Source: Blastocystis sp. Blastoise
Taxonomy: Eukaryota; Protista; Bigyra: Opalinata
Direction of reading: 5' to 3'
Assembly: GCA_039096225.1 (NCBI GenBank)
Contig: JBBPEB010000007.1
Coordinates: 434,001-498,000 of the forward strand
DNA length: 64,000 nt
Position 1 is the stretch's first letter; every line of letters starts with the position of its first letter. Positions 2,160-64,000 of the stretch are shown here, in pieces. Below the pieces are notes generated by a model. It saw only the letters and a list, made by a program, of their open reading frames with translations, made no database searches and was not told the origin of the DNA. Position numbers and translations under genes: made by a program.

Positions 2160-21824
<19,665 letters not shown>

Positions 21825-25746: not shown

Positions 25747-26433
25747 ATGGCTGCCAATGACGATGTTCATGTACATTCCGTAGAGAGTGATCCAAGCAGA
25801 GAGTTTTCTCCAATGAATGTGTATTATAGATTAGAATCTCCAATTCGATTAACTCCTCCTCCTCCTCCAATGATGAAGACGAAATCAATGAAAAAAACAA
25901 TCATTCTTCCAACCATGTTAAAGAAATCAAACTCTGCAGATGAAATACGAAATGAAACTATGTTAAATAGAAGACATTCAAGACTTATGAGATTATATGG
26001 TCATTATTTAAGTGAAAGTACAGAGGTTATAAATGAAGATAATCCAATTACTGATTCATTCGATATAATTGATGAGTTGTCTCCTGACTATATGTATCCT
26101 TATGAGAGCATAGGTCGTCTTGATCTTCGAGAAAATGATAAGATATATCAAGTATTCATAGATCTTCCAGGAATCAAAAGAAAAGATATAGCCTTAAAAT
26201 TGATCCATAATAGTCTATATTTAGAATGTCATCGATTTGAAGAAGATGATGATCATGAATATACATATACAATAGGCGAACGTCATTATGGTCGAATATG
26301 TCGTAAGATTCCTTTTGAGGAACCAGTTCAAATCGATCAAATCAGTGCTAAATTTGAGAATGGAGTCCTTATCATTCTTGTACCGAAGCGTATAGACATA
26401 GTAACAACAGAAACACCAATTGAAATATCTTGA
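25747..26433 (+). CDS. Small heat shock protein (HSP20/alpha-crystallin), intronless
   Basis: DLRENDKIYQVFIDLPG..ERHYGRICRKIPF..ISAKFENGVLIILVPK. Confidence 0.93.
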   Translation: MAANDDVHVHSVESDPSREFSPMNVYYRLESPIRLTPPPPPMMKTKSMKKTIILPTMLKKSNSADEIRNETMLNRRHSRLMRLYGHYLSESTEVINEDNPITDSFDIIDELSPDYMYPYESIGRLDLRENDKIYQVFIDLPGIKRKDIALKLIHNSLYLECHRFEEDDDHEYTYTIGERHYGRICRKIPFEEPVQIDQISAKFENGVLIILVPKRIDIVTTETPIEIS

Positions 26434-42891: not shown

Positions 42892-44245
42892 ATGTCTCGT
42901 ATGTTTTTTATACTTGATAGATTTACTTAGAATAGTTGAAGAATTAAAAGAACAACAAATGATGGAAATTGAAGCCATGGAATCCATCTATATGGACGAA
43001 TTTCAATTGATAAATAAGGATGAAGGTGAGTATTCTATAAAGATTATTCCTGATCCTTCTGGTGAAAACTTCGTATCTGTTGTTTTACATGTAAAATATA
43101 CTGAAGAATATCCTAATTCTCTTCCTGAAATTACTCTTGATGATCCTGTTTGTTTAAGAGGTACAGATCTTGAACAAATATATGATATAATTGATTCTTG
43201 TGGTAAAGAATTACTTGGAAATGAAATGATATTTACTATTGCTGAATCTGTTCGAGAATTCTTAATTCCTATTAATGAGCCTAGAAGTTCTGTATTTATT
43301 TATTATTTTATTTATTTATTTATTTTTTTATTAATTTATTTATTTACATAGTTTTCTTTATAATCTATATAATAATTTTATTATATATAAATATATAGGA
43401 AGTTAGTATGTATGAACAAATGATGAATAAACAAAAACATGATGCTAAAATACAAGCTATTGTAAGCTATTAATGTTTTTTTTAAATATATATATATATA
43501 TATATTTATATATATTTAGAAAGAAGCTGAAACTACTGTTGCTGAAAAACAAGTTAAAAAGAGAGGTATTTATAAGCTATTTATATATTTATTATTATCT
43601 ATGTTTCATTACAAATCTATATTAATTGCTTATATTCAATTTATATATATATATTTACTTTTATGATGAAATAATGTATATATATAATATAATATATAAT
43701 ATATACATATATAATATATATATAGGTACTCCTGTTACTCCTGAAGTCTTTCTTGCTTGGTTTGAAAAGTTTATGGATGAAATGGGCCATCATTTCTTAA
43801 CTGCAGAAGATAGTGATAAACCATCAGGTATATATATATATGTATTATTTGCTTATTTTTTATGATTTAATATTTTATATATATATATATATGCTATGTA
43901 CTTGAATAATCTTTATTATATATATATTATATTCTATTTTTTAGTTTTTTTTTACATAATCTATATTTAATGATAAACTATATATATAATATAACAATAA
44001 TAATTATTATAGGACGTGAATTATTCGAGAAACATTCTAAAGAATTATTGGCTCAAGAAAGATGTATATATATATATTTATATATTTATATAAATTCTTT
44101 TTTATATGACAAATAATAATATAATAGATTCTTTATTATCCTATACTATTACTATTATCTTTTTATCTTCTTTTATCATTTTCTTATCATTTTCTTATCA
44201 TTTTCTTATCATTTTCTTATCATTTCATTTCTTCTCTTCTTTTTC

Positions 44246-44279
<34 letters not shown>

Positions 44280-44458
44280 GTATAGCTCTTGAAGAGGGTG
44301 AAGGTGTATATGAAGATGAAGATGAAATATTAAAGGAATTAGAAGAACAACAAGCCAAAGAAGGGATTAATAATGATGCTACTCCTGAATATGGAGAAAT
44401 ATATAATATAGATTCAGATAATCTACCTAGTACAGATGATGAAGAAGATGAAGAATAA
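42892..44458 (+). CDS. RWDD1: RWD domain protein 1 (Gir2/DFRP2)
   Basis: EQQMMEIEAMESIY..YTEEYPNSLP..LGNEMIFTI; C-terminal GTPVTPEVFLAW..KPSGRELFE and acidic tail. Confidence 0.9.
44165..44225. repeat. 11-bp tandem repeat (TTTTCTTATCA)n in an RWDD1 intron
   Basis: About 4-5 visible copies. Confidence 0.8.
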
Positions 44459-45191
44459 AGAAATATATATTTGAATTCTATTCAAATAAAATAACTAGTT
44501 TTTTTATTTAATATATATAATTCTATTCTATAATATATATTTTTCTTTTATTCATCATCAACGTTAGGATTGATTCATCTCGTTTTTTTTCTGGTTTTAT
44601 ATACTTGGGAATATTCTTTTCGTATTCATTCTTGATAAGAAATACTTTCTTTCTATATATATATATTCTTTTTCCTCTTTGTGTTCATTTTTATACTATT
44701 GCATCAACAACTTGTTTTTTTTTGTTTTTCATTTTGTTTTTTTTATAACACTCCATTCAAAGTAAAATAATCAAAAAATATTTAAATTACAAGAATTCAT
44801 ATTTTGAAAATACTTTCGTTATGTAGTTCTTTCGTTTTTCACATACATGTGATTAGTCCTCATTCAGTATGTAGAATTATAGTTGTAGTTGACTAGACAA
44901 AACAGGGTCAGATATATCTATTATAGAAATATATATAAAACCCTAATTGACACACACAAAAAAACACATTTATGTAATTATAATATTCAAATTAAATACC
45001 ATCAACTATAGATTGCTATCAAATCATTCTCAACGGTATTTATATCACAATTTGATCAAAATTAAAAGAATAAATGAAAAAGAACAACAATATTGTGGAA
45101 ACACCATAATAACCATAAAAAAGAGTTATTATCCTGAAGTTTCACTTCTTTTCCCGAAACAACTTTTTTTCTTTAGTTAATATAGTTATCT

Positions 45192-48009
45192 ATGGAAAAT
45201 TTTTACGTTTCTGCAAACGGAAGGTCTGAGTCCATCCCATTGGATGACCCAGATACCTCTTGCGAAATGCTAGCTGATTGCATTGAAGTATTTTCATTTC
45301 TTAAACATCTTTATTATTTGTAGAAACTGTTTAATATACCAGTGGAAAGTCAGATATGGCAATATGATGGAAGAATGATTCCTATTGAAGGCACTTTTCG
45401 TTCACAACGATTTGCACGACAACAAACACTTTTCGTTTATACAAGACAAGTCTCTGATAATCAGGGTGATCCAAATCAAGAAATTACAATTTATGCTCAA
45501 TATGAAGACACCTGTTTGTCATTAGATTGCGTTTTGAATACAAGAATAGAGGAAATTCTTAATTGTTTTCTTTCTGTATGTACAATGAATAATTTGATTA
45601 TTACTTATTATACGTTTTTATTATAGTTATTCTTTGAAAGAGAAATTTTTGTTGATAATCCTTGTTTCGAATTTAATGGTGAATTCCTTGATAATGAAAA
45701 TACACTTGCTGATTATCATATCCAACATAGAGATAGATTAACTATCTTAAATAAACATCCTATTCAATTAGTATGTAAATATATTTTTTTTGTTTATAAT
45801 TATATTTTTAGGAATCTCCAAATCAATATTCTTCATTTAATATGAATATGAATAATATGAATATGAATATGAATAATATGAATATGAATATGAATAATAT
45901 GAATATGAATAATATGAATATGAATATGAATAATATGAATATGAATAATATGAATATGAATTATAATAATATGAATTATAATAATATGAATACTATGTCT
46001 CAATATCCTCCTATTACTATGTCTTCTAATTATAATCGTACTATTCCTATACCTCTGTCTAATCCTTATCCTTCTACTTATATTATGAATAATAATCAAC
46101 AATTACCTACTATGAATAATAATATGTATATGAATAATAATATGAATATGAATAATATGAATAATAATATGAATAATAATATGAATAATAATATGAATGA
46201 TATGAATAATAATAATAATAATCCAAATATTCCAAGTTCTATTCAGCCTATAAATCCTATACAATCCTTACCCTCTCTCTCTTCTCCTCCTCTTCCTCCT
46301 CCTCTTCCTATACCTCCATGTATACCTACTTCTAATCAGACTTCTTCTATTCCTATGCTATCATCACCTATTCATACTAGTAATAATACTAATTATAATA
46401 ATACTAATAATCCTAATTATAATAATAATCCTAATAATAATATACCTTCATCTCTACCTACTTTACCTTCTCTTCCTTTTCTACCTTCACTTCCTATACA
46501 AAACAATATGAATATAAATTCTTCTTCAATTCCAACATTACCACTCAATCAATTTAATTCGAATCCCTCTTTATCCTCTAATGCTGATCATGCCGCTGGT
46601 TCACAATCACGTGACCCAAACGTCATTAACAGTCTTTCAGGAAATAATAATATGAATAATATGAATATGAATATTCCTAATATGAATATTCCTAATATGA
46701 ATAATAATATGAATAATAATATGAATAATAATATGAATAATAATAATATGAATATTCCTAATATGAATAACATTATGAATAATAATATGAATAATAATAT
46801 GAATAATAATAATATGAATATCCCTAATATGAATAACATTATGAATAATAATATGAATAATAATATGAATAATACTATGAATATCCCAACTAATGCCTTT
46901 AGAATTCCTTCTCATCCATCTCTTCCTTTTATGCCGTTTCCTTATTCTATGTCATTTCCTTATTCTCTATCACTTCCATTACATAATCTCTCCTCTACTC
47001 TTCATAACCCAATGCAACTAATGAATCCAAATAATCCTATTATTCCTAATAATATAAATAATATGAACATTCCTAATAATATAAATAATATGAATATAAA
47101 TAATAATATAAATAATATGAATATAAATAATAATATTCCAAATAATTTCAGTTCTACTCCTGAAATGAACTTTAATTCTTCTTCTTCTATTAATATAATT
47201 CCTGATTCAGTTGAAATAATGAATGAAAATGATATAGATAAAGATGACGTATATATATATATATATATATTATTATATTATTATATCTCATTCTATATAT
47301 AGCAGTTTTGTCTCTATACTCATGATAAATTATATAAATTAATTTCTAAAAGTGATTTTAATAATTTGGATGATATTCTAACAGATATACATGTATATAT
47401 ATTTATATTCTTCTTAATTTTTTTTTCTTCTTATTCTTATTATTATTCTATATATAGACTAATAAATCTCTTCCTTATCCTATATATATATTTACTGACG
47501 GTCATCGTATTCAGTCTTTTGAAGAATTATATAATAGTCTTTCTAAGACGATCTCCTTTTATTCTGTATATTATTATTATAGTTTATTCTATATATAAAA
47601 TAATATATTTTATTTGTTTATTCTATATATTTGTTGTATATATATAAACGGATATATTCTATATAATAGTATTATTAAATAGTTTTTAGATAAGTTTTTA
47701 ACATATATATATATAGATATCTTCTATTGAAATGGATTCTATTCACTCTGAAGAACCTTGTTTTGAAGGTATATACTATTTATAATATTAATAATAATAA
47801 TAATAATATAATATATATATAGATGAATGTAATGATAAAACTACTGGTTATTTATGCTTTAATTGTATATATATTATATTATATTATATATATACATATA
47901 TATATATATAATTATTATAGATACTTCATCTTTCCTTTCTGTTGAAGCTATTAATAAATTCCTATGGAACATTCCTAAAGAAACATCTATTCTCTATATG
48001 TCTGGTATA

Positions 48010-48056
<47 letters not shown>

Positions 48057-49966
48057 TAATAATAATAATATAATAATTATGATAAGTAAAATAATGGAAT
48101 AAAATTATTTTATTTATTATTATTATATATATATATATATATATAGATATTAATGATATTAAATATCGATATAAGATATTTATTGATGATAATAATATCA
48201 CGAAATGTATTCCTTATAGTATTACTATACCCCTTTTAAGTATATATATTTATTATTATTAATATAACTATACTATTATTTATATATAGCTACTTTAGGT
48301 ATAGATTTTGAAAAAGAAGAAGAAAAAGAGGATGATAAGAAGATATATATATCATTTCCTTATACTCATCATATTACAACTGTTCATATATCCTGTATAT
48401 ATATTATATAAGATAATATTACTAATAATAATTATAATATTTTAATTCATAAATATGACAATAATAATAGTATACATAATAATATATATATAATAATAAT
48501 AATATATATAGTATTTGAAGATGACGATTTATATGAAGATGCAACTGAAGAACGAGAAACCGTTATAAAACACTATTTAAATTGTTTCCCTAAAGATGAT
48601 AAAATACAGATATTAATTGATCAAAAAGATTATTCTTCTATTCTTCACAGTCTTTCTAATGGTATCATATATGATAATGGTGATACTGGTATATATATAT
48701 ATATAATACTATATAATACTATATACATTTTTATTTATAAAACTATATATATACATTTTTATAAAACTATATATAGGTATATTACTATCAAGAATTCATT
48801 CTAATGATTTATTAATTGAATATCCTCCTGATATATCTATTCTTATTCAATCATCTATTGATAATTCTTCAAAAACATTGATTTCTTCATTATTTTTAGG
48901 AATGAATTCATTTATGATAAATGATCATTTTTATATTCAATCTATATCAAAAAATACTGGATCTAAAAAAGCAAAAACAATTGATTATGTATTTCCTTAT
49001 GTTAAGCAAAATGATGAGAATTCTTATAATATATTTGAAGGTTGTATTTATACTTATTATATTTCGAATATTAAAGATAAAGAAATTACTATTGGTTCAA
49101 CAACAATTATTTGTAAATATAATAATTTAATTATTCATTCAACAGATAGTCAATTTTCTATATTTATGGATTCTATTGAATATATATATCAGCCTTATCG
49201 TTCTATTTCTCCTATACAAAAACGTATTATTCCAACATTTACGGATAATGCTATAAAACGTAATCAATGTGTTGAACAGAGTATTTTAAAAGGTATGAAT
49301 TTATTAATTGAAGGTACAACTTCTTCTGCTAAAACATATACTGTTGAATATATATGTCAAAAATGTCAATTACCTTTATTAAGATTTAATTTCTCTCCTT
49401 CAACTACTCTAGAAGATCTTATAGGTGATTATATTATTAAAACTATTAATGGAAAACAAAAATTAGTATTTTCTGAAGGTCCATTTACTCAAGCATTTAT
49501 TAATGGTTATATATTATTATTAGATGAAATGTCATTAGCAAGAGAAGAAGTAATAGAACCACTTATGGGTTGTTTAGATTCTGAAGAATTATATATAAAT
49601 AAAACATCTGGCTATCAAATATATAAAATGCATAAAGATTTCCGTATTATTGCTACTCAAAATCCTGCTGGTTCTACTTATGAACGTACTAAATTTAATA
49701 ATCGAGTTTTAGATCATTTCAGACTGCTGAAACATCCTGAATTTCCTGAAATGAGTGATGAAGAAATTCAACGTATTTCTGATAATATTTTTATAAATAA
49801 TAATGAGAATAATAATAATGATAATATTGATGATGATGAATTGAAGAATAAGAATAATAATAAAGAGGATATTCATGAGAGTAATGAACGATCTTATAAT
49901 ACTTTTGAAGCTTATGATCAAGCTAAAAAAAGAAATGAGAAGTATAAAAAAGATATTATTGACAAG

Positions 49967-50003
<37 letters not shown>

Positions 50004-50405
50004 GTGATAAAAATAAAAATGAGGGTGATGAAGATATTCTTCCTTATTCTACTTATTCCCGTGAATATACTATTCGTGATTTCACACGTGTATCTTCTTT
50101 ATGTCGTTATATGTCACTTTCTCATGCTTTATCACTTGTATTTTCAAATCCAGAAATAGAATCCTTTAATTGTCCTTCTATTCCTATTACTTATTCAAAA
50201 CAACCTATGTATCCATCTATATGGAATGAATGTATATATAATATTGATAGAGGATTAACTGCAGGAAATCATATTTTAATAGTATCAAAATCTGCATTTA
50301 CATCTTCAACTTATATTCATGCTTATTTAGATTATAAAATGAATCTATATAATAAAAAGAATAAAGAAATGAAAAATAATAATGATTATGATGATAATAA
50401 TAGTG

Positions 50406-50442
<37 letters not shown>

Positions 50443-53400
50443 TAATAATAATAACAATAATAATAATAATAATTCTTCTGAATCATTATTATATTCTATA
50501 CATAATGTGAATACTATATATTGTTATAGTTCATTAGCTACAGATACTTTAGTAGGATCCTATATTATGAATAAAGAGAATCGTAAGAAGCCTATATGGA
50601 AAGATTCTGCTTTATTACAATCAATAACTAATGGTGAAATATGTTTATTTGAATCATTACATTTATTAAAATCAAATGTAATTGAAAGATTAAATTCATT
50701 ATTAGAATTAATTCCTAATGATGGAAATAATCATATTATTCGTTTTGATGAACGTACTATTCAACCTGTTATTACTATTCATCCTAATTTTAGAATTATT
50801 GCTACTGTAGAAGAAAATGCACTTAAACGTTTTTCACCTGCTTTATTAAATCGATTTTTAATTATTAATATAGATGAACAATTAATAAAAGATGAACAAT
50901 TATTTACTGATATTCCTTTTGATAAATATGATTCTAAAATATCGAATCATGATTATAATAAGAATGACAATAATAATAATTATAATATAAATTCTATAAT
51001 TAGTACTGATTCTGATAGTGATTCTAACACTAATTCTGATAGTGATTCAGATAGTGATAATAATAATAATAAATATAATAATAATACTAATAAATATTAT
51101 AATAATAATTCTAGTGATGATTCTTCTAGTGATGATTCTTCTAGTGATAATTATGAAGAAGAAGATTTTTTCTCTTCATTTTTAACAACGAACAAAATAG
51201 ATTTCAGTGAATTTGATACATTTGAAAAAATGAATATTTATAAATTATATAATTTTCTTTCTCAATTTTTAGATGATAAACAAATAAGTAAATATTTATC
51301 TGTATATTTAAAAAGTGATTCAATATCTTCTTTAGAAGATAATATACCTGATATTATTCATAAAAAAGAATATTTTGAATTATTATTTTCTATATGTTTT
51401 AATCGTTGTATAAGTATATATGGATTATCCGAAAGTGGAAAGACTTATTTATTAGATAATATATTATATAATATTCATAATTCAAATCATATAGTATTAC
51501 ATTTATCAAATGATACAGAAATAGGTCAATTATTAGGTCATTATTCTATAGATGGTGAATTTCATGATGGTATATTATTACAATGTATAAAAGAAGGTAA
51601 AGTATTAATATTAGATCAAGCACAAATGATTAATAAAGAAATATTTGAAGAATGTCAACAATTTATGAATCCTTTAATTGATTCATTTATATATAGTTAT
51701 CAAACTATACATATTCATCCTGAATTTAGAATAATATTTAATTATACTACACAATCTATAGAACATTTACCATATATATTACCTGAATATATACAAAGAA
51801 TACCAATTCCTTCGTATACAAAGGAAGAAATTAAATTAATTATAAATGATAAAGATTTAGATTTGATTATAGATAAAGAATCGCTTTCTTTATCATTACT
51901 TTTAAAATATCAAGAAATATATACATATTATTATGAACAATCTCATTTTTCTATTTTATATTATATATTTTTATATTCAAAGAATCCTGAAGAATTATGT
52001 AAATTAAATCCTAAAGAATATTCTATATATTTATCTTTTTGTTCAACTCCAATTACTTATAAAGAACGAAAAATTAATTATTTCGATGAAGGTTATAATG
52101 AAGATGATGATGATTATTTCTTAAGAAGTAGTAATTCTAATATAGATGACATATCAAATCATTTAATTAATAAATATGATGAATATATTACTGATAGTGA
52201 TAGTAGTGATAATGATAGTTATAATAGTGATACTGATAGTAGTGATAATGATAGTTATAATAGTGATAATAGTGATAATAGTGATAGTAGTGATACTGAT
52301 AGTGATTATTCTAATAATTCTAATAATTCTAATAATTCTAATAATTCTAATAATTCTAATAATTCTAATAATTCTAGTGATAGTGACAGTGACAGTGATC
52401 ATTATGTTATAAAGAAAAAGAAGAACTTTTTTGATTCAAAATCATTAAAGAAAGAATCTCTTCAATATAATGCACAAAAAACTCTTGTTACAAAGAAGTA
52501 TTATTATACTTTATCAAAATTAACAATGAATTTAAATATTGTATTATATAAACCTTTAGAAGATGTAAAACAATCATTTCTTCAATTATTATTTAAAGTA
52601 TTATTATTAAAGAAATCATATCCATTATTATTTATTGGTCAATCGGATGAACGTAATAATTTAATTTCTTATCTCTATCCTTCTGTTGAATGTATAGAAT
52701 TATCTCATAGTTTAGAATCATTTCATTTATTAGGTCAAACAACAATTATGAATAATATAGCTCTTAAACAATTATTATTAACATTTAATCATATATTAAA
52801 AGATGAAGATCATCCTTTTTATTCATGGATTAAAAATATAGAAGAAAAATCAAATGATAATAATAATAATCAAACTTCATTATTATTATATCAACCAGGA
52901 ATAGTCTTTAATTCTATATTAAATAATCAAGTTATAATATTAGATAATTTAGATTTATTAAATCATGATACTTATCAACGATTTTTACTTTTATTAAATA
53001 TATCTCCATATGAAGTATTATATGAAGATATGAATGGATCATTTTCTAAAGAAATTAATAATTATTATTCTAAATTAATAGATTCTAATTATAATTATAC
53101 TATAAGTAAAAATCATATATCATTTCCTATTCATGCAACCGTCGATCGATTACATTATAATACTGTTGCTTGTTATCATGATTTCTTCCCTATATATCTA
53201 TATACTACAGAAGATGAAGAATTATATAATAAATATCCTATATTAGAAAAAGTTGATGATTTATTATTATTAACAAATCATCATACAAGATCTATACAAG
53301 AAGGATTAAATAAATATAATATTTCATTAACTATTATTGATATATTACAACAAATTATATCTTCATTTCATAAATTATCTGATTGTTTATATTTCTTAAT

Positions 53401-54029
53401 GAGTTGTTTTACTGATAGTCTTTCTAGAAATACTTTAAATACATTACCTTTTATTCATAATGTTTCTCCTCAATTATTAACATTATTAAAACAAAATAAT
53501 GATAATGAAAATGAAGTTAATGTTAATGATTTATATGATATATTTGAAAAATCATTTATTGATAAAATATGGCCATTATTTAATAATAAAAAATCTACTA
53601 TAAAATTTTATCCTGTAAAAACTATATTAATAATAGGTATTATTATACAATTAGGTAATGAATATAATATACCAACAATATTAGAAGGTGCTCCAGGTAT
53701 AGGTAAATCAGCTTTTGCTATTGAATATTATAAATATAAACAAATACCTTTAGAACGATTTAATTTTGCACCTAATATGACTATACAAGATTTATTTGGT
53801 AGTTATACTATTAATCAATTTAAAGAATTAGATTTTATACCTGGTAAATTAACAACATTTTTAATGTCTGATTCTACTAAACAACATGTATTATTATTAG
53901 ATGAAATTAATTTAGCACCTGTAGATGTATTAGAAGTTATTACTTCTCTTATTGAATATAGTAAAAATACAAATTTAGATTATTATTTAAATAATATTAA
54001 AAAAGATGATGATAATGATGATGATGATG

Positions 54030-54072
<43 letters not shown>

Positions 54073-57000
54073 GAATGATAATAATAATAATAATAATAAT
54101 CAATATAAAAATATATATAAAAATAATAATAAACAAAATAATAATAATTCAGAATATAAATCAACTATGGTTTCTTTACGTAATTATTTCTATATACCTG
54201 GTTTTAAAAAGATATGTTTACCTCCAATGACAATTATATGTACATTAAATCCTGCTATTATGTCTTCTCAACGTAATTCTTTACCTAATTCATTAATACA
54301 GAAATGCTTATTATTTAAAGATATAAGTTATTCTATATCAGAATTAATTTATATTAGTCAACGTATTATTGAAAATGTTGCGAATACATTAGAATCTACA
54401 AAAGATCTATATGAAAAGAATAAAAATAAGAATAATATAAATAATGTTACTATTATTCAATCCAATGAATTTATTAATATTCTTAAAGAATTATTTAAAG
54501 CAAATTTAGAACTTTCTAAAGAATATCGTACACCTTTTTCATTAAGAGATATTCTGAAAGTATCTGAATTAATCTTAAAAGGAAATTTAAATATATATGC
54601 TGCTTTTTGGATTGTATTTGGTTGTAAATATTATGAAAAAGGCTATAAAAGAATTAATTCTATCTTAAAATTAAATTCAATAGATAATATATCTATTCAA
54701 ATCAATTCAAATTTATTAGTCTTTCATGGCCCATGGTCAATTACATTTGATGTCGAAAATAAAGAAAAAGATCCTTTATTATTATCTTCTGAATTATTAT
54801 TATGTTATAAATTAGCATTATCTTATGAGAGTAAACGTACTATTATTTTATATGGTCCTTCACCTTCAGGTAAATCGTATACTATACAAAGATATGCAGA
54901 ATTAATGAAAAAGAAATTAATTCGTATACCATTACATTCTGAATCTTCTTCTTCTACATTATTAGGTGAATTAGAATTATTAGAAGATAATGGTAAACCT
55001 ATATTAAGATTTAGAAATGGACCTTTACCAGATGCTATGGAAAATGGGTATTGGATATTAATTGAAGATATTCATTTAGCTAGTGGTGAATTATTAGAAA
55101 GATTTAATAGTTTATGTGAAGAAAATCCTACTTTTAAATTATTAGAATCAGATGTAGAATGTACTTATGTTAGTAATTTATCGAAAAAGTATTTTATAAA
55201 TGATTTAATAACAAATAAACAAATCGTAAATCCAAAATATGGTAAAAAATTAATACATCCAGAATTTCGATTATTTTTTACATTATCTACGAATAATATA
55301 ACTGTTATTCCTCCACCTTTATTATCTCGTTGTATTATTATTGCTACAGAATCATTATCAAATCAACAATCTATTCAAGAATTATGTTTATTAAAACATA
55401 ATAGTTTTAAACCTGAAAATTTTGGTGAAAAAGAATGTACAAATTTCCGTAAAGCTTTGAATGTAATTGATACAAATGATAAAGAACAATTTAAATTAGT
55501 ATATGATCATGAAATAAATTCGAAGAATAAAGTTATAGTAAGTCTTAATAAATTTAGTAAAAAAGATGACGATTATTCTACATTTTTAACATTATTACAA
55601 TCAAATAAACCAGATATAAATGCATTAAGAGAATGTATTAAGAAGATTATTAAATATTCAATTGATACATTTACGGATCAAGATTATGAATTAATTGATA
55701 AATGTATTTATAGAAATAGAGATAATTTTATTGTATATCCTTTATTTTTAATAAAGAAAACTTTAGAAGAACAGAAAGGAGTGAATATACCTATTTATCG
55801 TCAGAATAATCCATATTATAAACGATTTAAACATTGGTTACAGTTATCTGATTATAATATACCTTTAAAGAATGAATATAAACAAAATTTTAATTATATG
55901 CATCCATTATTATTATCAACAAATAAAAATATTGAATTTAGTAATATATTTGAAATTGAAAAGCCAAATATAAATAGTTTCTTTTATTATTATTTAAAAG
56001 ATGAAATGGATGTATTTTATAATCAAAATACTATAAGAGAACATAAAGTTATATATCAATATATTGAAGAGATTATAGAAAAAGAAAATATTATAGATAC
56101 AAAAAAATATAGTAGTATTATTGGTTGTGTTAGTAGTTTATGTTCTATATATTATAAATATTCTAAACTTAAGAAAGATATTGATGATGCTACTAACAAT
56201 AAGCATAATGAAAAATGTTTTTCTTTATTAGAAGAAATTAATAATTATATTCGAGATATACCAAGAATTAAAAAGGTTTTAGATGAAAATCATATATATC
56301 CAAAAGAATTAACTACATATATTACTGAAATACGTGAAAGTAAAGATAGTTTAGATATGTATTATGATAAAGATACAGATAGTAATACAAAATCAAACCG
56401 AAATAAGTTATTATTAACACGATATAAAAGTAAATTGAAAGATTTTGATCAAGGTGTATCGAGTGGTTTAGACAACATAGAAAAATCAATTAATATAAAG
56501 AATTATTTACCATTTTTTGAAAAACTAAAATCATTCCAAGATAAACTTGATTATAATACGATTAATAATAAAGAATTAAAATTATACTTACAATGTAGTC
56601 ATTTTATAGTATTTTATGAATGGCTAGATAGTCAGAAATTGAATGTAGTTTCATCATTTTATCAATTTTATGATATGTTTAAATCAATTCAATTAAATTC
56701 AGAACAATTATTTATATCTATTGGTGATTTTAAAAATTATTATCCTTATTTAAAACAATATATTAATTATTATATGTCATTATTATGTTCTTATATTACT
56801 ATAGATGATACTATATTAAAACTAATAAAGGGAAGTGATTTATATATACATCAATCTAATGTTAAAGAAGAAGAGTTAATAAAATGTTTATCATTTTTAG
56901 GTAAGCATGATTGTTTATCTATAGAAAATAATAAACGAATTAAATCTTTAAAATCAACAACGAATAAAGAAACAATAAAATCAAATTATAATTTTATTAT

Positions 57001-60000
57001 TAAAAAACAATTTCTAGATACAAGTCCTGTGCCTTTTATAGATATATATAAATCTAAATTATTACAATTAAAAGAATTAATTATTCAAGAAGGAAGTTTA
57101 GATAGTAATTTATTATTATCCTCAGGTAATTATACTTCTGAATATAATACTATAGAAGATATTGAAGAAGGTAAAATATATAATAAAAGAAATTTTGAAT
57201 ATGAACATCAATATAGACATTCTTCTCCTTATAATGAACTTAATGAATTCATTATTAGTACAAATATTAATAATAAAGATAAATTATATTTAATATGTCC
57301 TTATAAGAGAATAAATGCTTATCAAGTTGTTTATTCAATTATAGAAGAATTATTTAAAAATAAAGAGAAAAAGAATTTATTAATAGAAAAATGTAAAGAG
57401 TTGAATGATTTTGATTCGATTATAGAAGATATTGATAATATATATGAAGAAGATTATATAGATAAAAAAGAAAGTAATGAAAATAAACAAATAGCGAATA
57501 AAGACAAGATTCAAAAACTAGAAGAAAATGAGAATAGAATTATTAAAGAATTGAATGATTGTGTTGATACTATTGAAGGAAAAATGGTTGAAAGAGTAAA
57601 AAGTGATGAAGAAGCTAAGAAATATACTCAATCTTTAGAGAATCATAATTCAGTTTTGTTTTTAAATACTTTATTATTTCATAAAGCATTTAATAACACA
57701 ATTAGTACAATAAAATCTTTGGATAATAAATGTATTTCATTTGAAATGATCAAATTTAGTATATACAAGATTCTAGAACATTCTGAAAGGAATTCTTTTA
57801 GATCCGAGAAAAATAATTCCTTTTCTTTTCAAATTGTATATATAACTGTAAGTAAAGAAATAGAATCTAAAAATGATAGTATTCAAGTAACATTGAAGAC
57901 TAAATATAATCATTATCAATCATTATCTTTAAGTTATTCACCTATAGAATTAAAACCAAATAAAATTAATGATGTATTAAATGTTATGGATGAAAAGAAA
58001 GATAATTTTGAATTATCTATTCCTTATATATATAAAAAGAATATGAAGAATTCTGTATATATATTTGTATTACCTTTTTCGACATTTCCAATGAGTGTAG
58101 AAACTAATGTCGAAACTAATATTTCATATTATTATTATTCATATATTATTAATAAAAATGTGCAATCCTTAACAGATAATTTTAAAGATGTTGAAGAAGG
58201 TAATAATAATAATAATAATAATAAACATAAAAAAGGAAAGAAGGCTAATAATAATAAGAAAAAACAAAAACAACAAAAAAACATGATTATTAATGGATTT
58301 GATGAAAGAATTGCTTATGTATTATTATTATTATTAAAAAACTTTTGTATTACTTATACTATTCATTATAAAGTTGAATTTCCTAAGCCATCAATTGATT
58401 TATTGAATCAGTTTTTTGAAAATCAATCTCGTAATTTATCAGTAGATTCTCTTTCTAAACCAAAAAATAAATTTATTTATTTCTTTAAGAAGCCTATAAA
58501 TGATAGTGATTTATCATTATTAATGTTTGAAGCTTATGAAGATAAACAAAATGAAAATTATGGATATATTACTTTTAATTATCAAATATTATATACTATT
58601 TATCAACAAGAACATCCGATCAATAATCAATTAGATGAAGAAGAAAAGGATCAGAATCTTTTATATAAGAATTATCCTTCTTTATTATTAAAAGAAATTA
58701 CTATTATTAATAGTATTTATACAATACAAGTAGATAATAGTTTAAAGAAACCATTACAATTATCAGATTTGATTATTATTACAGATAAATCGGATAATTT
58801 ACCCTATAAACAATATAAATGTAAAGAAAATCAATCTATAAATAAAGAAGATGAACATTATAAAGAATTACAAAAAGATTTTGAAAAGAATAAGAAAGAA
58901 AAAGAAGATTTATTAGAATATAAACAAAGATTAGAGAAAGAAGAAATAGAATTAGTAGAACCAAAACATTTAAGTGTGAATATATTTATTCCTCCAATAA
59001 AAACTATGAAACGTATTTCTGATTCTATTCAATTTACTTTAAAAGATTGTATAGTTATATTAGGAAATAATAATGAAGAGATTTTATTCCCTAAAGATGA
59101 TATATATCATTTACCTGTATTTTTATTAAATTATCATAAACCTAGTATATCTATACCTATAATGAATCCAAAATCATTATCATTATCATTTAAAAGTGAT
59201 GATTGTATTGTAGAATATAAAGAAAATCAATTATATATTACTTATGAAGACAATGCTTTTCATAAAATACGATTAATGCAATCCGCTATTCATATAACTG
59301 TAGAAGAATCATATACAAAAACATTTTTTGTTACATTTTCATTTTCTGATGATGATAAGATTGTTTTTGTTGATAAAGAATGTAGTTGTTTTAGTAATAT
59401 AATAACTGTATCTCCTCAAGAACGTGAAGTTCATTATACATATAAAAATAAAACAGGAGAAATTAAAAATCAATCTTATAATAAAAAGAATAGTAAACCT
59501 CAAAAATATAAATTATTTGATGAATATTATGTTTCTTTTGAAGATACGGAACAGAATTGTAAATATTTTAAAATTAAAAATGGTGAATTTACTCCTTATA
59601 TGAATAGAAAAGATTGTATTAATTATTTATCAATTCCTCCTTCTATAATAAATCAAGTAGATACATTTATAAATAATATTGAATCACATAATATTAATTT
59701 CTATATAGAAGCCTTACAAAGTTTACCTTATCTTTTATGTATACAGAATAATCAAGAGAATTATGTTATATATTATTCTATATATAATTATTTAAAACAA
59801 TCATGTGATAAAAATCTTTATTTACCTTATATAAAGGATATTATTAATACTATAAATACATTATTAACACAGAAAAAGTTATTATCATGGACAGATGCAG
59901 ATTCTATAATACAAGCAAATAAAGAAGATAAAAAGAAACACAAACAAGAAGTTCAACAAATAAAAGAAAAAGAAAAAGAAAAAGAAAAAAAGATTGAAGA

Positions 60001-60191
60001 AAATAAGAAAAAACAAGAATTAAAAGCTAGTTTATTTGTCACTACTTCTACTTATATATCTCCTCAACAAAAAGGAAAAGGACAAACAAAGAATATATTA
60101 AAGAAAGATTTAACAAGTGAATTAAAGAATACTATTAATTTATTTACACCAAAACCTGTTTTGGATGCTTCTTATAATGATATTGATATAG

Positions 60192-60249
<58 letters not shown>

Positions 60250-63200
60250 ATCAATATTAACAGAAGAAGAACTTAAAGAAAAGAAACTTAAAAAGCAAAA
60301 GGAAATAGAATCTATACATGATAATTTACGTTCTATTCAAAGTAATATTGTTGTGGATATGTTTAAGAAATTATCATTAAATAAATATTTTGAAGAATAT
60401 ATATTAAAACGTTGTGATACAGAAGAATGTATAAAACCGAAAAGAATAGAAAAATCAACAATAATTAATATATCAATTGAAAATGATAATGATAATAATG
60501 AAGAGAAATTAAATAATCTTTCATCTAATGAATATGATTCTATATATAAATCAATATTACCTTCATTTATTCATCTTTATGATATAGTTTATTCTTCGAA
60601 ATATATTCAATATGAATCAATACAACATTTATCAATTATTATAGATACAAATCTTTCATTTAAGAAACAAAAATCCAGATTACGTACAATTGAAGCTATC
60701 CTATTGGTTCTTCTTTGTGAAGAATGTCATATTGGTTGTTCTATTTATTGTACAGGTTCAAGAAGTCAAATATTCTTATTAGCTGTTGAAAAAGAATCAA
60801 TTGAAAGTAAAATAACTAAATTGTTTGATTTAGAAAGTATTTCAAAAACACCATCTACTCCTTTAGATTTCTTTGAATATAAGACTATTATTAAAGATGA
60901 TCCTACTAAAAAATATATATTAATAACAGATGCTTTTTCTGAACAATTAATGTCTACAAATACTATTATTAAGGAATATATACAGAAATTATTACCTTAT
61001 TTATATATTATTCATATTATTGGAACACAAGAAGATGAAAAACTTTCTGATAAGAATCAACAATTTATGAATAATCAATTACAATTATTATATAAGAATA
61101 ATCTATATAGTGTACAATCCTATTTAGAGATTAAATCCTATAAGTATCCTGATTCATTTATTCATTTCTTTTTTACTGATAAACTTATTCAATTAAAATA
61201 TTCACAAAAAGTTAGTAAAGATAATAATAATACTATAAAATCAATACCTCTATATAATAATTCACAAATACCTATAGAAGATTATACTATATTAAAATAT
61301 GATCATCAAGGAATAAAACCATTTATTTTACCAGATATTCGTGAAGATCGTTTATTATATATTCCTGAAGTGAATAATGAAGAATTATATACTTATTTAA
61401 ACAGTAAAATACCTGGAGATCTATTTTTTAATGTATTTAATAATACTATATTACAACCCAATAAACCTACTTCATGGGTAGCTTCTACTACAGGTACTAC
61501 TTTACATAATAGTAATTATTTCCGATTTGTATTAACAGGAACAGGTGATGGTAAAATATTTAAAAAGAAAACAGGAAATAAAATAAGAAGTTATTGTGTT
61601 TCTATAGTAATTGATTGCAGTTATTCTGCATTTAATACTATTAATAAATCACATAGTTATAGTACTATATTATTTTTATTAAGAGGTATTAGTGAAATGT
61701 CTATTCCTTGTATTGATATATGGGTTATTAATGATTCTATTCATCAAATAGCTACTGGAATTAATTCGGATCAATTATGGACTGAATCTATCTTATCTAC
61801 ACTTATTTCTTCTTTAGAAAAACCATCTAGAAATACTATTTTATCTCAAGGATTATTAATTGCTTGCTCTACATTAAAAGCAAGATCAGAAAATAGTTTA
61901 TTATTTGTATTCACTAATGGAACAACTATAAAAGGTGAACAAGAATATATTAATTCTATTTTAACTAGAAATGATATTCTTTGTTATACAATAGGACTTG
62001 GTTATTTATTATATAATTATAAAAATATATATCCAACATTTATTTGGTCTGCTAATCCTCATTTATTAAGAGATATTTTTATGAATATTAATATATCTTC
62101 AAATACTATTCGTCCTACTATTGAATGTAAATCATTCTCTATATTTAATCAACTTTCCAATACTATAGAATTATCAGAACAATCTTATGAACCTCATAAT
62201 GAAAATATTATTAAACAAATTAATAATCATGAAGGTATATATGAACAATTAGCTGGTGTTTTTAATATACAATCGATAGAAGAAGGTAATAATAATGATA
62301 ATAAGAATCAATTTGAAGGACAAGAAATGAATACTGATTTTGATTTATGTAGAGATGGATCGTTTAAAGGATTTAAAGTATTATTTGTTATATTATATTT
62401 ATGTAGAAATGAAAGAGATGATCAAGGTCATATTATTGATCCTAAAATTACAAGAGATATATTAATAGAAGGAGATGTAGAGAAAGATTATCGTATGTCA
62501 CCCTGTATTAAATTAGAACAAAAAGGATTTAAAGTTGATATTGTATATGATTATGAAACTGCTTCTCGTTATTTAGAAACAGGTAAATATCGTGTTTGTT
62601 GTATTACATGTAGTCCTGGAGATAAAGTATTACCTGAAAATGATAATAAGATTTATAGTCATATATCCAATAGTTATGGTAGATATGAACAAAATGCAAA
62701 TGGAAAACGTATCAATAATGATTATAAGTTTTTATCATTATTTTTAAATACATTACATCATTTTAATAATTGTGGAGGAGGTATAATGTGGATGTTAGAG
62801 AATTATCCATATACATTTGAAGCAGATATGTATTTTAAATCTTTTGAAGATATTCCACAATTAGTAGATCCAAGAAAAGCTATTCCTGGTGGTAATAATA
62901 TAGTTAGAGATAAAAGTGGTATTAAGAATAATGCTACTGAACCAGGTACATATATACAAGTAGGTGGTGATGTAATAAGAAATAGTACTCAAGCAGTTAT
63001 TCAATTAGATGTCGGATTAACTACTATTTATGAAGGTAAAACATTAGCTGCTATGAGTGAAAGTGCATTAATTAATAGAGGATTCTTTGTTTTTGCACGT
63101 GATCATGAAGGAAATCCTTCTATAATGATTCGTGAAGATTCAAATCGTCATAGTAATAATAATGATGGTACTCATAAAGGTAGAGTTATTATTGATAGCG

Positions 63201-64000
63201 CTGCTTCTAAATTATTCTTAGAATTCGATACTATAGGTACATGTCGTTGGATATCCAATAGTTTTGCTTGGTTAGAAAATGTTGAAGAATATATACTTGC
63301 AGGTGCATCTGTTTTACCTAAAACACTCGATATGAATAGAAATATTCGAGAAGTAACTACAGATATTCCTTATGAAGAACGAAGATCTTCAAAATCAGCT
63401 AATTTTGTATTAAGTATAATTGTTGATTGTACAGGATCTATGCAAGGAGAAATTGATGGTGTTAAATATAATATTGTTCGTGCTATAGAACAAGTTGAAG
63501 ACTATAAAAAGAAACATGCTTTATCTTCATGTGAAATATTAATGCAATTTATGGGTTATCGTGAAATAGAAGCACTACATCATAATCATCCAGATCGTTT
63601 CTTCTCTGAAATTAAAAATAATAGTTTTGACATTCAGAATTATTTATATAGTGTTCAAGCTGGTGGTGGTTCATGTTGTTGTGATTTAGAAGGTGGATTA
63701 GAAGATGCTGTTGATAAAGTTATTAATAAATATCCTTCTCCTGAATATGTCCATGCTTTTATTATTATTGGTGATCAACCCTATCATGGAGAACAATATG
63801 GATGTAGATATTCTAATCATCATCCAGTGACTGGTCAGTCTTATGATCATGTATGGAGAAATGTGAGTAATAAATTAAAACAACTTGATGCTTATGTATA
63901 TTTTATTCCTGCAAGAAATGAAGAAATGTTACCATCATATGAAATATTGCGAAAAGCTTATGATCCTACACATGTGTTCAAAACAAAAATGTCAAGAGAT
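45192..64000 (+). CDS. Giant divergent midasin-like protein: UBL-UBL, N/M-rich region, 6 x AAA+, linker, VWA, MIDAS-VWA, GATase-like domain, VWA (3' partial)
   Basis: 12 GT-AG introns between 45288 and 48776, then one frame open from 48777 to the window end (missing from the ORF track because it has no stop). Walker A: GTTSSAKT (~49313), GLSESGKT (~51422), GAPGIGKS (~53687), GPSPSGKS (~54854); midasin motifs EDLIG, LLLDEINLA, ERLNSLLE, IHPNFRIIAT; MIDAS VIDCSYS. Confidence 0.88.
45842..47130 (+). repeat. (ATGAAT)n/(AAT)n low-complexity coding region, Asn/Met-rich
   Basis: MNMNNMN and NNMNIP repeats in frame. Confidence 0.9.

Follow-up and report, generated by a model that had tools for sequence, protein, structure and literature searches.

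The question raised by this locus is whether a very long spliced gene of the tortoise-gut protist Blastocystis sp. Blastoise, whose product combines six AAA+ ATPase modules with VWA domains of the type found in midasin, encodes a midasin or something else. The gene occupies the end of the window analysed here, a stretch of 64,000 nt (contig C29:434001-498000); all coordinates are positions within this window, on the + strand, except where another contig is named, and the features are collected in Table 1. The genome comprises 33.3 Mb in 34 contigs, with a G+C content of about 21%. The initial annotation described the gene as a repurposed midasin paralog in which a motor had been fused to ubiquitin-like (UBL) domains and effector domains. 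We suggest that it is probably a member of an unnamed family of single-chain hexa-AAA+ machines, which would belong to the AAA_5 (MoxR/midasin/dynein) clade and follow the midasin plan: six AAA modules forming a ring, then a long linker and, at the chain end, metal-ion-dependent MIDAS-type VWA domains that would serve for gripping.

The gene is intact and under selection. Its giant last exon runs for 5,074 codons without a stop, whereas the two remaining frames contain 390 and 1,010 stops; the probability of such a stop-free run, calculated from base composition, is about 1e-231, which rules out a chance open reading frame (ORF). The uninterrupted frame around this exon (48707-64000) measures 5,098 codons and, when followed past the window edge, closes after a further 23 codons. 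A reading of 62081-64000 and the sequence beyond as an intronless vWA gene of 2 kb in its own right is rejected, since this stretch is the in-frame end of the 15-kb exon. One spliced frame of more than 6,000 codons had been claimed initially; the 5,074-codon exon, open at the window edge, stands, but the whole gene amounts to ~5,950-6,000 codons, a range that includes the small exons without fixed borders at 47249-48511, and so does not clearly exceed 6,000.

Upstream of the giant exon, the introns of exons 1 to 4 are all clean GT-AG introns and in frame. Exon 1 aligns with the N-terminus of P0001 (WA158_005327), the protein of the nearest paralog, which is located on contig C21 and is 53-58% identical. 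Exon 2, bordered by an AG acceptor at 45322-45323 and a GT donor at 45576 with the phase kept, matches residues 32-168 of P0001 (tblastn, E 7e-15). Exon 4 sits in an open frame at 45812-47299 and had no Pfam family in a Pfam scan. Between exons 4 and 9, at least 180 in-frame GT-AG paths (GTA...AG) lead through three conserved blocks, which align to P0001 and P0002. Exon 9 shows 45% identity with P0001 residues 593-648, and at its junction with the giant exon the donor G/GT at 48689 and the acceptor at 48776 restore a Gly codon and keep the frame.

The six tandem AAA+ modules that were first read from the sequence are borne out by jackhmmer, which places AAA_5 modules at residues 191-345, 589-724, 894-1032, 1311-1486, 1651-1873 and 2038-2216 of the giant exon, and by Pfam, in which AAA_5 matches the protein with an E-value of 6.5e-62 in five stretches. 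As judged by their motifs, the ATP sites are unequal: a complete Walker pair is present at D1 and D5 only, D3 and D6 keep Walker A only, and D2 and D4 are degenerate. In an iterated search, six modules were likewise found in every paralog and in metamonad homologs, and the modules of this gene match family proteins position by position. D1 always has both Walker motifs family-wide, and D4 is always dead.

Six AAA_5 modules together with MIDAS-type VWA domains are what would be expected if the gene were the canonical midasin (MDN1/Rea1) acting in 60S biogenesis, and UniRef auto-names a family member from Kipferlia ‘Midasin’. This identification is refuted. A separate spliced midasin lies on another contig, at C34:~165900-175100, where it is colinear exon by exon with residues 320-2451 of Polysphondylium midasin at 35-59% identity (tblastn); this reading covers the ring half of the C34 gene. 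The same query gives only scattered, non-colinear AAA matches to the window. AAA_lid_5 (PF17865) and AAA_lid_7 (PF17867) have their sole location in a whole-genome search at C34:168852-173659, and neither appears when this protein is scanned with Pfam, nor in the Pfam lists of P0001, P0003 and P0004. When the ring was used as query, midasins scored 104-180 bits over 6-8% of its length, as compared with 447-1,772 bits for family members. Searches of the genome with PF21108 (MDN1_4th) and PF00092 (VWA) were blank everywhere and are uninformative. Because a separate canonical midasin is present on C34, the gene is not the ribosome-biogenesis orthologue, in agreement with the initial annotation, nor is it the only midasin-like gene of the genome.

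It does not follow that the gene is a duplicate of midasin. A tree of 114 AAA modules contains a D1 clade (Shimodaira-Hasegawa-like approximate likelihood ratio test, SH-aLRT, 96) and a D5 clade (SH-aLRT 98) that join Blastocystis with metamonads, but no pairing of any family module with its same-numbered counterpart in midasin. Since the modules do not pair by position, the family is a separate hexa-AAA_5 lineage and no recent midasin duplicate, and its tie to midasin is one of clade and design. The idea of a one-off repurposed paralog is also at odds with the existence of at least 16 giant paralogs and a wider family.

The 898-aa C-terminal tail of the protein matches at least 16 ORFs of 4,429-5,515 aa in the genome, all of them giant copies that share this tail, plus fragments, some of which are near contig ends. 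At 16 genes of ~15 kb in 33.3 Mb, the family accounts for ~0.7% of the genome; close reading covered the copies other than C8b, both copies on C3, C13b and C26b. Five copies (Table 1) are 80-93% identical in protein over ~4,800 aa, which identifies them as a recent amplification of a 15-kb gene; their VWA-2 (DCKCS) and VWA-3 (CTSGN) have degenerate MIDAS motifs. Partial copies of the tail are found at C25:9662-11233, C16:17306-18166 and C22:15721-16578, all less than 20 kb from contig ends, and may be subtelomeric fragments. Four-fold degenerate sites are identical to those of the C21 paralog at a rate of 0.78-0.90 in 49100-49800, 54900-55400 and 61200-61700, and mostly of ~0.3-0.7 in the rest of the gene, on small site counts. 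The three stretches correspond to D1, D6 (which is nearly identical as protein) and the start of the MIDAS domain; gene conversion could account for them, but so could simple codon bias.

Beyond this genome, a search of 1.84 billion representatives yielded 195 relatives of the tail (phmmer E-values of 1e-147 to 1e-20 against family members). Named carriers are Blastocystis ST1 and ST7, Tritrichomonas musculus, T. foetus, Histomonas, Kipferlia, Chilomastix, Dysnectes and Aduncisulcus, in all of which the proteins are ‘hypothetical’ or auto-named. The profile of the tail (hidden Markov model, HMM) is covered at positions ~24-900 in Blastocystis and parabasalids and at ~60-720 in most fornicates. 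In the tail tree all Blastocystis sequences form one clade (100) whose neighbour is a pair from T. musculus (99), apart from the remaining parabasalids and the fornicates. Because Blastocystis adjoins this pair, a transfer between anaerobic protists may have taken place; the tail tree would agree with it, but lacks a root and contains long branches. No description of the family was found in the literature on Blastocystis and midasin or on midasin-like proteins, vWA and Trichomonas; the family is unnamed and uncharacterised.

Three further proteins were noted in these searches. P0195 (T. musculus, 6,200 aa) has the full tail module and the UniRef name ‘Protein kinase domain-containing’, from which some family members may carry an enzymatic domain. 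P0014, a 4,172-aa protein from a JGI metagenome that is named ‘NorQ’, has six AAA_5 modules and a C-terminal VWA_2 in a midasin-like plan; its modules stand on long branches, apart from midasin and from this family. P0139, from a 4-Mb contig, was rejected as a bacterial relative, as it is only a VWA/Ig-like protein without AAA modules.

Little of the tail is visible to sequence searches: the 898 residues have no match in a PDB sequence search, and Pfam finds nothing beyond a weak VWA_4, which reaches an E-value of 3.4e-11 in the T. musculus homolog. An AlphaFold2 model of the tail (predicted local distance difference test, pLDDT, 78) splits into three domains, at tail residues 21-263, 354-681 and 694-898. 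The first, VWA-2, is best matched by Rea1-MIDAS (6qta_A, Z 18.0, root-mean-square deviation, rmsd, 2.9, 202 aligned) and MDN1-MIDAS (8ql1_A, Z 17.0). VWA-1, modelled at pLDDT 68 and a predicted template-modelling score (pTM) of 0.72, has the same two structures as its best matches (8ql1_A, Z 14.6, rmsd 3.9, 213 aligned; 6qta_A, Z 14.0). The second domain of the tail is GATase1-like, with matches to the IFT52 N-domain (5fms_A, Z 14.7, 199 aligned), an OST subunit (6s7o_G, Z 14.4) and a ThuA-like protein (1t0b_A, Z 14.3, 215 of 240 residues aligned). The third, VWA-3, is similar at Z ~16 to integrin beta I-like, vWF A1 and TFIIH VWA domains. The series of VWA, midasin-type MIDAS, GATase-like domain and further VWA, which had been proposed from the sequence, is thus supported throughout by the predicted folds.

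The same is not true of the label of effector domains. In 30 sequences, the near-invariant columns of the GATase1-like domain are Leu, Gly, Tyr, Ala, Phe, Glu, Thr, Asp and Asn; no Cys or His is found among them, as would be required for a catalytic Cys-His-Glu triad. Because no Cys or His is conserved, the domain is probably non-enzymatic, a binding or scaffold module, and the effector label is unfounded. It resembles IFT52, OST48 and ThuA-like ‘GIFT’/GATase1-like proteins in fold; unlike them, it lies between two VWA domains of an AAA+ giant; its own sequence is unrelated to theirs by Pfam, and it has no catalytic triad.

In Foldseek, the tail is most similar to the VWA domains of NorD in its complexes with NorQ (9qh6_G, E 1.6e-7), and NorD also aligns with VWA-2 (Z 15.6) and VWA-1 (Z 12.0). 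These matches, and the finding of the family in anaerobic protists only, might indicate a maturation factor of MoxR/NorQ type, which would supply an enzyme of anaerobic metabolism with a metal or cofactor, or reactivate it, in the manner of NorQD, CbbQO and chelatases. A mechanism of metal insertion by MoxR-VWA pairs has reportedly been described. The bacterial MoxR-class systems (NorQ-NorD, CbbQ-CbbO, MoxR-vWA ternary systems) indeed share with this protein modules of AAA_5/AAA_3 type and a VWA working partner. They are, however, homohexamers of an ATPase of ~300 aa with a separate VWA protein, whereas here a single spliced eukaryotic gene encodes all six modules and the three VWA domains in a chain of ~6,000 aa, and no associated effector gene or domain was found. 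The MIDAS domains of Rea1 and MDN1 outscore NorD for both VWA-1 and VWA-2; a dedicated maturase would hardly be expected to have a chain of 6,000 aa, a linker of 1,700 aa and 16 diverged copies; and no partner enzyme is linked to the gene. A role as maturation factor therefore seems very unlikely.

The preferred reading, of a family on the midasin plan, is best judged by comparison with midasin itself. In both, one chain combines six AAA_5 modules with a long linker and a VWA domain of MIDAS type, and the UBL that is a known MIDAS ligand in midasin may have counterparts in the putative UBL domains of this protein. The differences are considerable. Active sites are placed mid-ring in Rea1, whereas the complete Walker motifs are at D1 and D5 here. 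The MIDAS-type domain is duplicated and non-terminal, being followed by the GATase1-like domain and the third VWA; the putative UBLs are predicted to be in the same chain; there are at least 16 copies as opposed to one midasin; and neither AAA_lid_5/AAA_lid_7 signatures nor any linker similarity is detectable. The ~1,700-aa linker, as initially annotated, was located between the ring and VWA-1. It has no Pfam family, no usable match in a protein-atlas embedding search and no profile similarity to the midasin linker. It is also the fastest-evolving part of the protein, with 24-41% identity to the nearest paralog as compared with 50-83% for ring and tail.

Dynein heavy chain resembles the protein in having six unequal AAA modules in one chain, some of them degenerate, and there are weak Pfam matches to AAA_7 and Dynein_heavy. 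As a candidate it was rejected, given the presence of VWA domains, of which dynein has none, and the absence from Pfam scans of dynein-specific families, including DHC_N, stalk and microtubule-binding signatures. Blastocystis is without flagella (PMC10690189).

At the N-terminus, the UBL-like exons of the initial annotation are real, with GT-AG borders and an intact frame, and their UBL identity is suggested by half-domain matches. Exon 3 alone, which is half a domain, matches Pfam ubiquitin with an E-value of 4.8e-4 at 20.3 bits, below the gathering cut-off of 25.4, over profile positions 36-66 of 72. Its PDB matches are almost all ubiquitin (Ub residues ~39-72), at E-values of only 0.26-1.6 for single ubiquitin, and it is among the 37 ubiquitin-like candidates of the genome. 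Exon 2 searched alone gave no Pfam and no PDB sequence match; the identity of UBL1 is proposed on the basis of its alignment to the paralog and the pattern recognised in the initial annotation.

Whether this head belongs to the same gene as the motor has to be considered. The database model WA158_005327 of the C21 paralog joins UBL-UBL exons to a giant exon in the same order, and the pipeline behind this model picked introns supported by RNA-seq (PMC10690189). Two genes could instead be present, one for a small protein of UBL-UBL and low-complexity sequence (45192-~47248) and another, further downstream, for the AAA-VWA giant. The join is predicted, the exons at 47249-48511 have no unique solution, the metamonad members mostly lack an N-terminal extension and start at or near D1, and the annotation paper warns that adjacent genes can be merged (PMC10690189). 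Against this, the order of UBL-UBL, low-complexity region, small exons and giant exon is kept in the C21 paralog, which is annotated as one protein, and one intron position within the UBLs appears to be common to both. In-frame GT-AG paths exist throughout, and the blocks upstream of the giant exon are conserved in P0001 and P0002 and splice in phase. Moreover, no plausible start for a separate gene precedes the conserved sequence of the giant exon, as the opening 23 codons of its frame are read as intron. Two separate genes are thus quite unlikely.

If the gene is a hexa-AAA+ machine on the midasin plan, a mechanism can be proposed. ATP turnover, mainly at D1 and D5, would power movement of the ring and linker, and this movement would tug a ligand whose acidic residue binds the metal ion in the MIDAS-type domains. 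The effect on a client protein would be extraction or remodelling, similar to that of Rea1 on Rsa4 and Ytm1. Because canonical MDN1 is retained, the clients would not be pre-60S particles, and the many diverged copies suggest different clients. In the pair formed by this gene and its C21 paralog, the N-terminal tandem UBLs would be the likeliest MIDAS ligand, in cis or in trans, and might act as a latch (autoinhibition) or as a head-to-tail link between molecules.

Docking of UBL and MIDAS receives weak support from co-folding of P0001 residues 4380-4645 plus Mg with P0001 residues 1-170, which scored 0.37, as compared with 0.01 for the best of three controls. At least 66% of contacts agreed between runs, and the partner had a pLDDT of at least 80. 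Of 78 solved complexes 51 attain the mark applied, as do 2 of 108 mismatched pairs; passes with a score of 0.60 or below comprise only 5 of the 78 solved complexes, but all 4 mismatches that passed (of 180).

Several points weigh against this reading of the gene, and in particular against the role of the UBLs. The pass in co-folding is weak, may be a memory of solved Rea1-MIDAS/Rsa4-UBL complexes, and was obtained with the C21 paralog, not with this gene. The join of UBLs to motor is a prediction based on the RNA-informed annotation of that paralog. Nor is the UBL head family-wide: members from T. foetus and related species begin at D1, at residue ~21, and similarity to these UBL exons is detectable in the C21 paralog only. 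The MIDAS motifs are imperfect, with D-x-N-x-S in VWA-1, T-N-G in VWA-2 and DCTQR in the nearest paralog. In hhalign comparisons of the linker and tail of the family with those of midasin, no signal was obtained even for the MIDAS domains, the best E-value being 0.39.

The expansion of the family allows a different view of its function, also put forward initially by analogy with RNF213 and with bacterial MoxR-VWA systems. The gene could encode a machine of conflict or defence within the cell, one of a diversified family of sensor-motors like MoxR-vWA ternary systems or RNF213, in which the copies would recognise different invaders or selfish elements. The concept of MoxR-vWA conflict systems is said to have been described. 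Such a role would agree with the number of paralogs (at least 16, with fragments near contig ends), the recent burst of five copies, the rapid evolution of the linker relative to ring and tail, the patchy spread in anaerobic protists, where the Blastocystis clade stands beside the T. musculus pair, and faint Pfam matches to bpMoxR and nSTAND3 in metamonad homologs. It is less easily reconciled with the domain content: in this protein and 30 tail homologs, Pfam finds AAA and VWA families only, with no nuclease, protease, TIR or E3 recognised, and the GATase1-like domain has no conserved catalytic Cys or His. Conservation of the architecture and of the pattern of live and dead ATP sites from Blastocystis to metamonads is more like that of a cell-biological machine than of an arms-race receptor, and the free-living anaerobes Kipferlia, Dysnectes and Aduncisulcus are also carriers. 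RNF213 (mysterin), proposed to act in immunity, is alike in being a giant single chain whose six-AAA ring is active at some of its sites only. By contrast, Pfam finds no RING/E3 module in this protein, which has a VWA tail and shows no sequence relation to RNF213 in any search. With neither an RNF213-type E3 module nor a defence effector in the Pfam scans, the analogy remains speculation, and a defence function is unlikely.

Table 1. Features of the hexa-AAA+ gene, as positions in the 64,000-nt window, and locations of the five closely similar copies on other contigs.
Feature	Position	Strand	Description
exon 1	45192..45287	+	32 codons; start codon ATG 45192, putative UBL1 N-terminal half, GT donor 45288
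exon 2	45324..45575	+	84 codons; putative UBL1 C-terminal half and UBL2 N-terminal half
exon 3	45627..45770	+	48 codons; putative UBL2 C-terminal half
exon 4	45812..47248	+	479 codons; M/N/P-rich low-complexity; donor GTATAT at 47249
several small exons	47249..48511	+	borders not fixed; conserved blocks 47458-47565, 47921-48004, 48290-48394
exon 9	48512..48688	+	59 codons; conserved pre-ring segment spliced onto giant exon
giant last exon	48777..64000 in window	+	5,074 codons; stop at window-equivalent 64070-64072
AAA D1	49277..49741	+	Walker A GTTSSAKT, Walker B DE; both kept in all family members examined
AAA D2	50471..50878	+	Walker A lost, Walker B FE; degenerate
AAA D3	51386..51802	+	Walker A GLSESGKT, Walker B DQ
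AAA D4	52637..53164	+	Walker A lost, Walker B DN; degenerate family-wide
AAA D5	53657..54325	+	Walker A GAPGIGKS, Walker B DE, both canonical; N-rich insert
AAA D6	54818..55354	+	Walker A GPSPSGKS, Walker B ED
linker	55355..60499	+	~1,700 aa; K/E- and N-rich tract at its end
VWA-1	60500..61186	+	midasin MIDAS-type fold; motif D-x-N-x-S plus SD
VWA-2	61367..62095	+	midasin MIDAS-type; DxSxS intact (DCSYS); T-N-G vs family consensus T-D-G
GATase1-like (ThuA / IFT52 ‘GIFT’-type)	62366..63349	+	apparently non-catalytic
VWA-3	63386..64000	+	generic VWA; motif DCTGS; runs 23 codons past window
five-copy burst	C8:~1414100-1428800, C26:~829500-844100, C16:~1706400-1720800, C25:~926100-940500, C30:~43300-57700		

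Two other loci in the window were recognised. Long ORFs at 5485-18959 (+) with RCC1 repeats (9429-11501), MIB_HERC2 (13784-16696) and SPRY (17859-18959) look like a second giant spliced gene, of HERC1/HERC2 type. A small heat-shock protein gene (HSP20/alpha-crystallin, E 4.7e-12) is located at 25747-26433 (+).

To our knowledge only a few eukaryotic single-chain six-AAA ring machines are known (dynein, midasin and RNF213), and each of these has taught how ring ATPases convert ATP to directed force. The gene described here would represent a further, unstudied family on the midasin plan, with live sites at D1 and D5, a duplicated MIDAS and two extra tail domains. New in this analysis are the distribution of the family in metamonads, the trees of its modules and tail, the folds of four tail domains and the exon map of the gene. 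A bolder proposal, which we make tentatively and consider doubtful as a whole, is that, in addition to dynein and midasin, eukaryotes have in this family a third lineage of single-chain hexa-AAA+ machines, which would occur only in anaerobic protists and may have spread by gene transfer, and in which the UBL-bearing members would be self-latching extractors and the 16 or more copies would handle different clients, possibly in surveillance or defence.

The presence of the family in Blastocystis of the human gut, Tritrichomonas and Histomonas gives it medical and veterinary interest, and its confinement to anaerobic protists is relevant to the sharing of genes between eukaryotes of the gut. The subfamily to which this gene belongs would in addition carry a possible ligand, the UBL, in the same chain as the domains that may bind it. 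If this built-in UBL-MIDAS pair is true, it would provide a self-contained system for studying how ligands are engaged and released by machines of midasin type.

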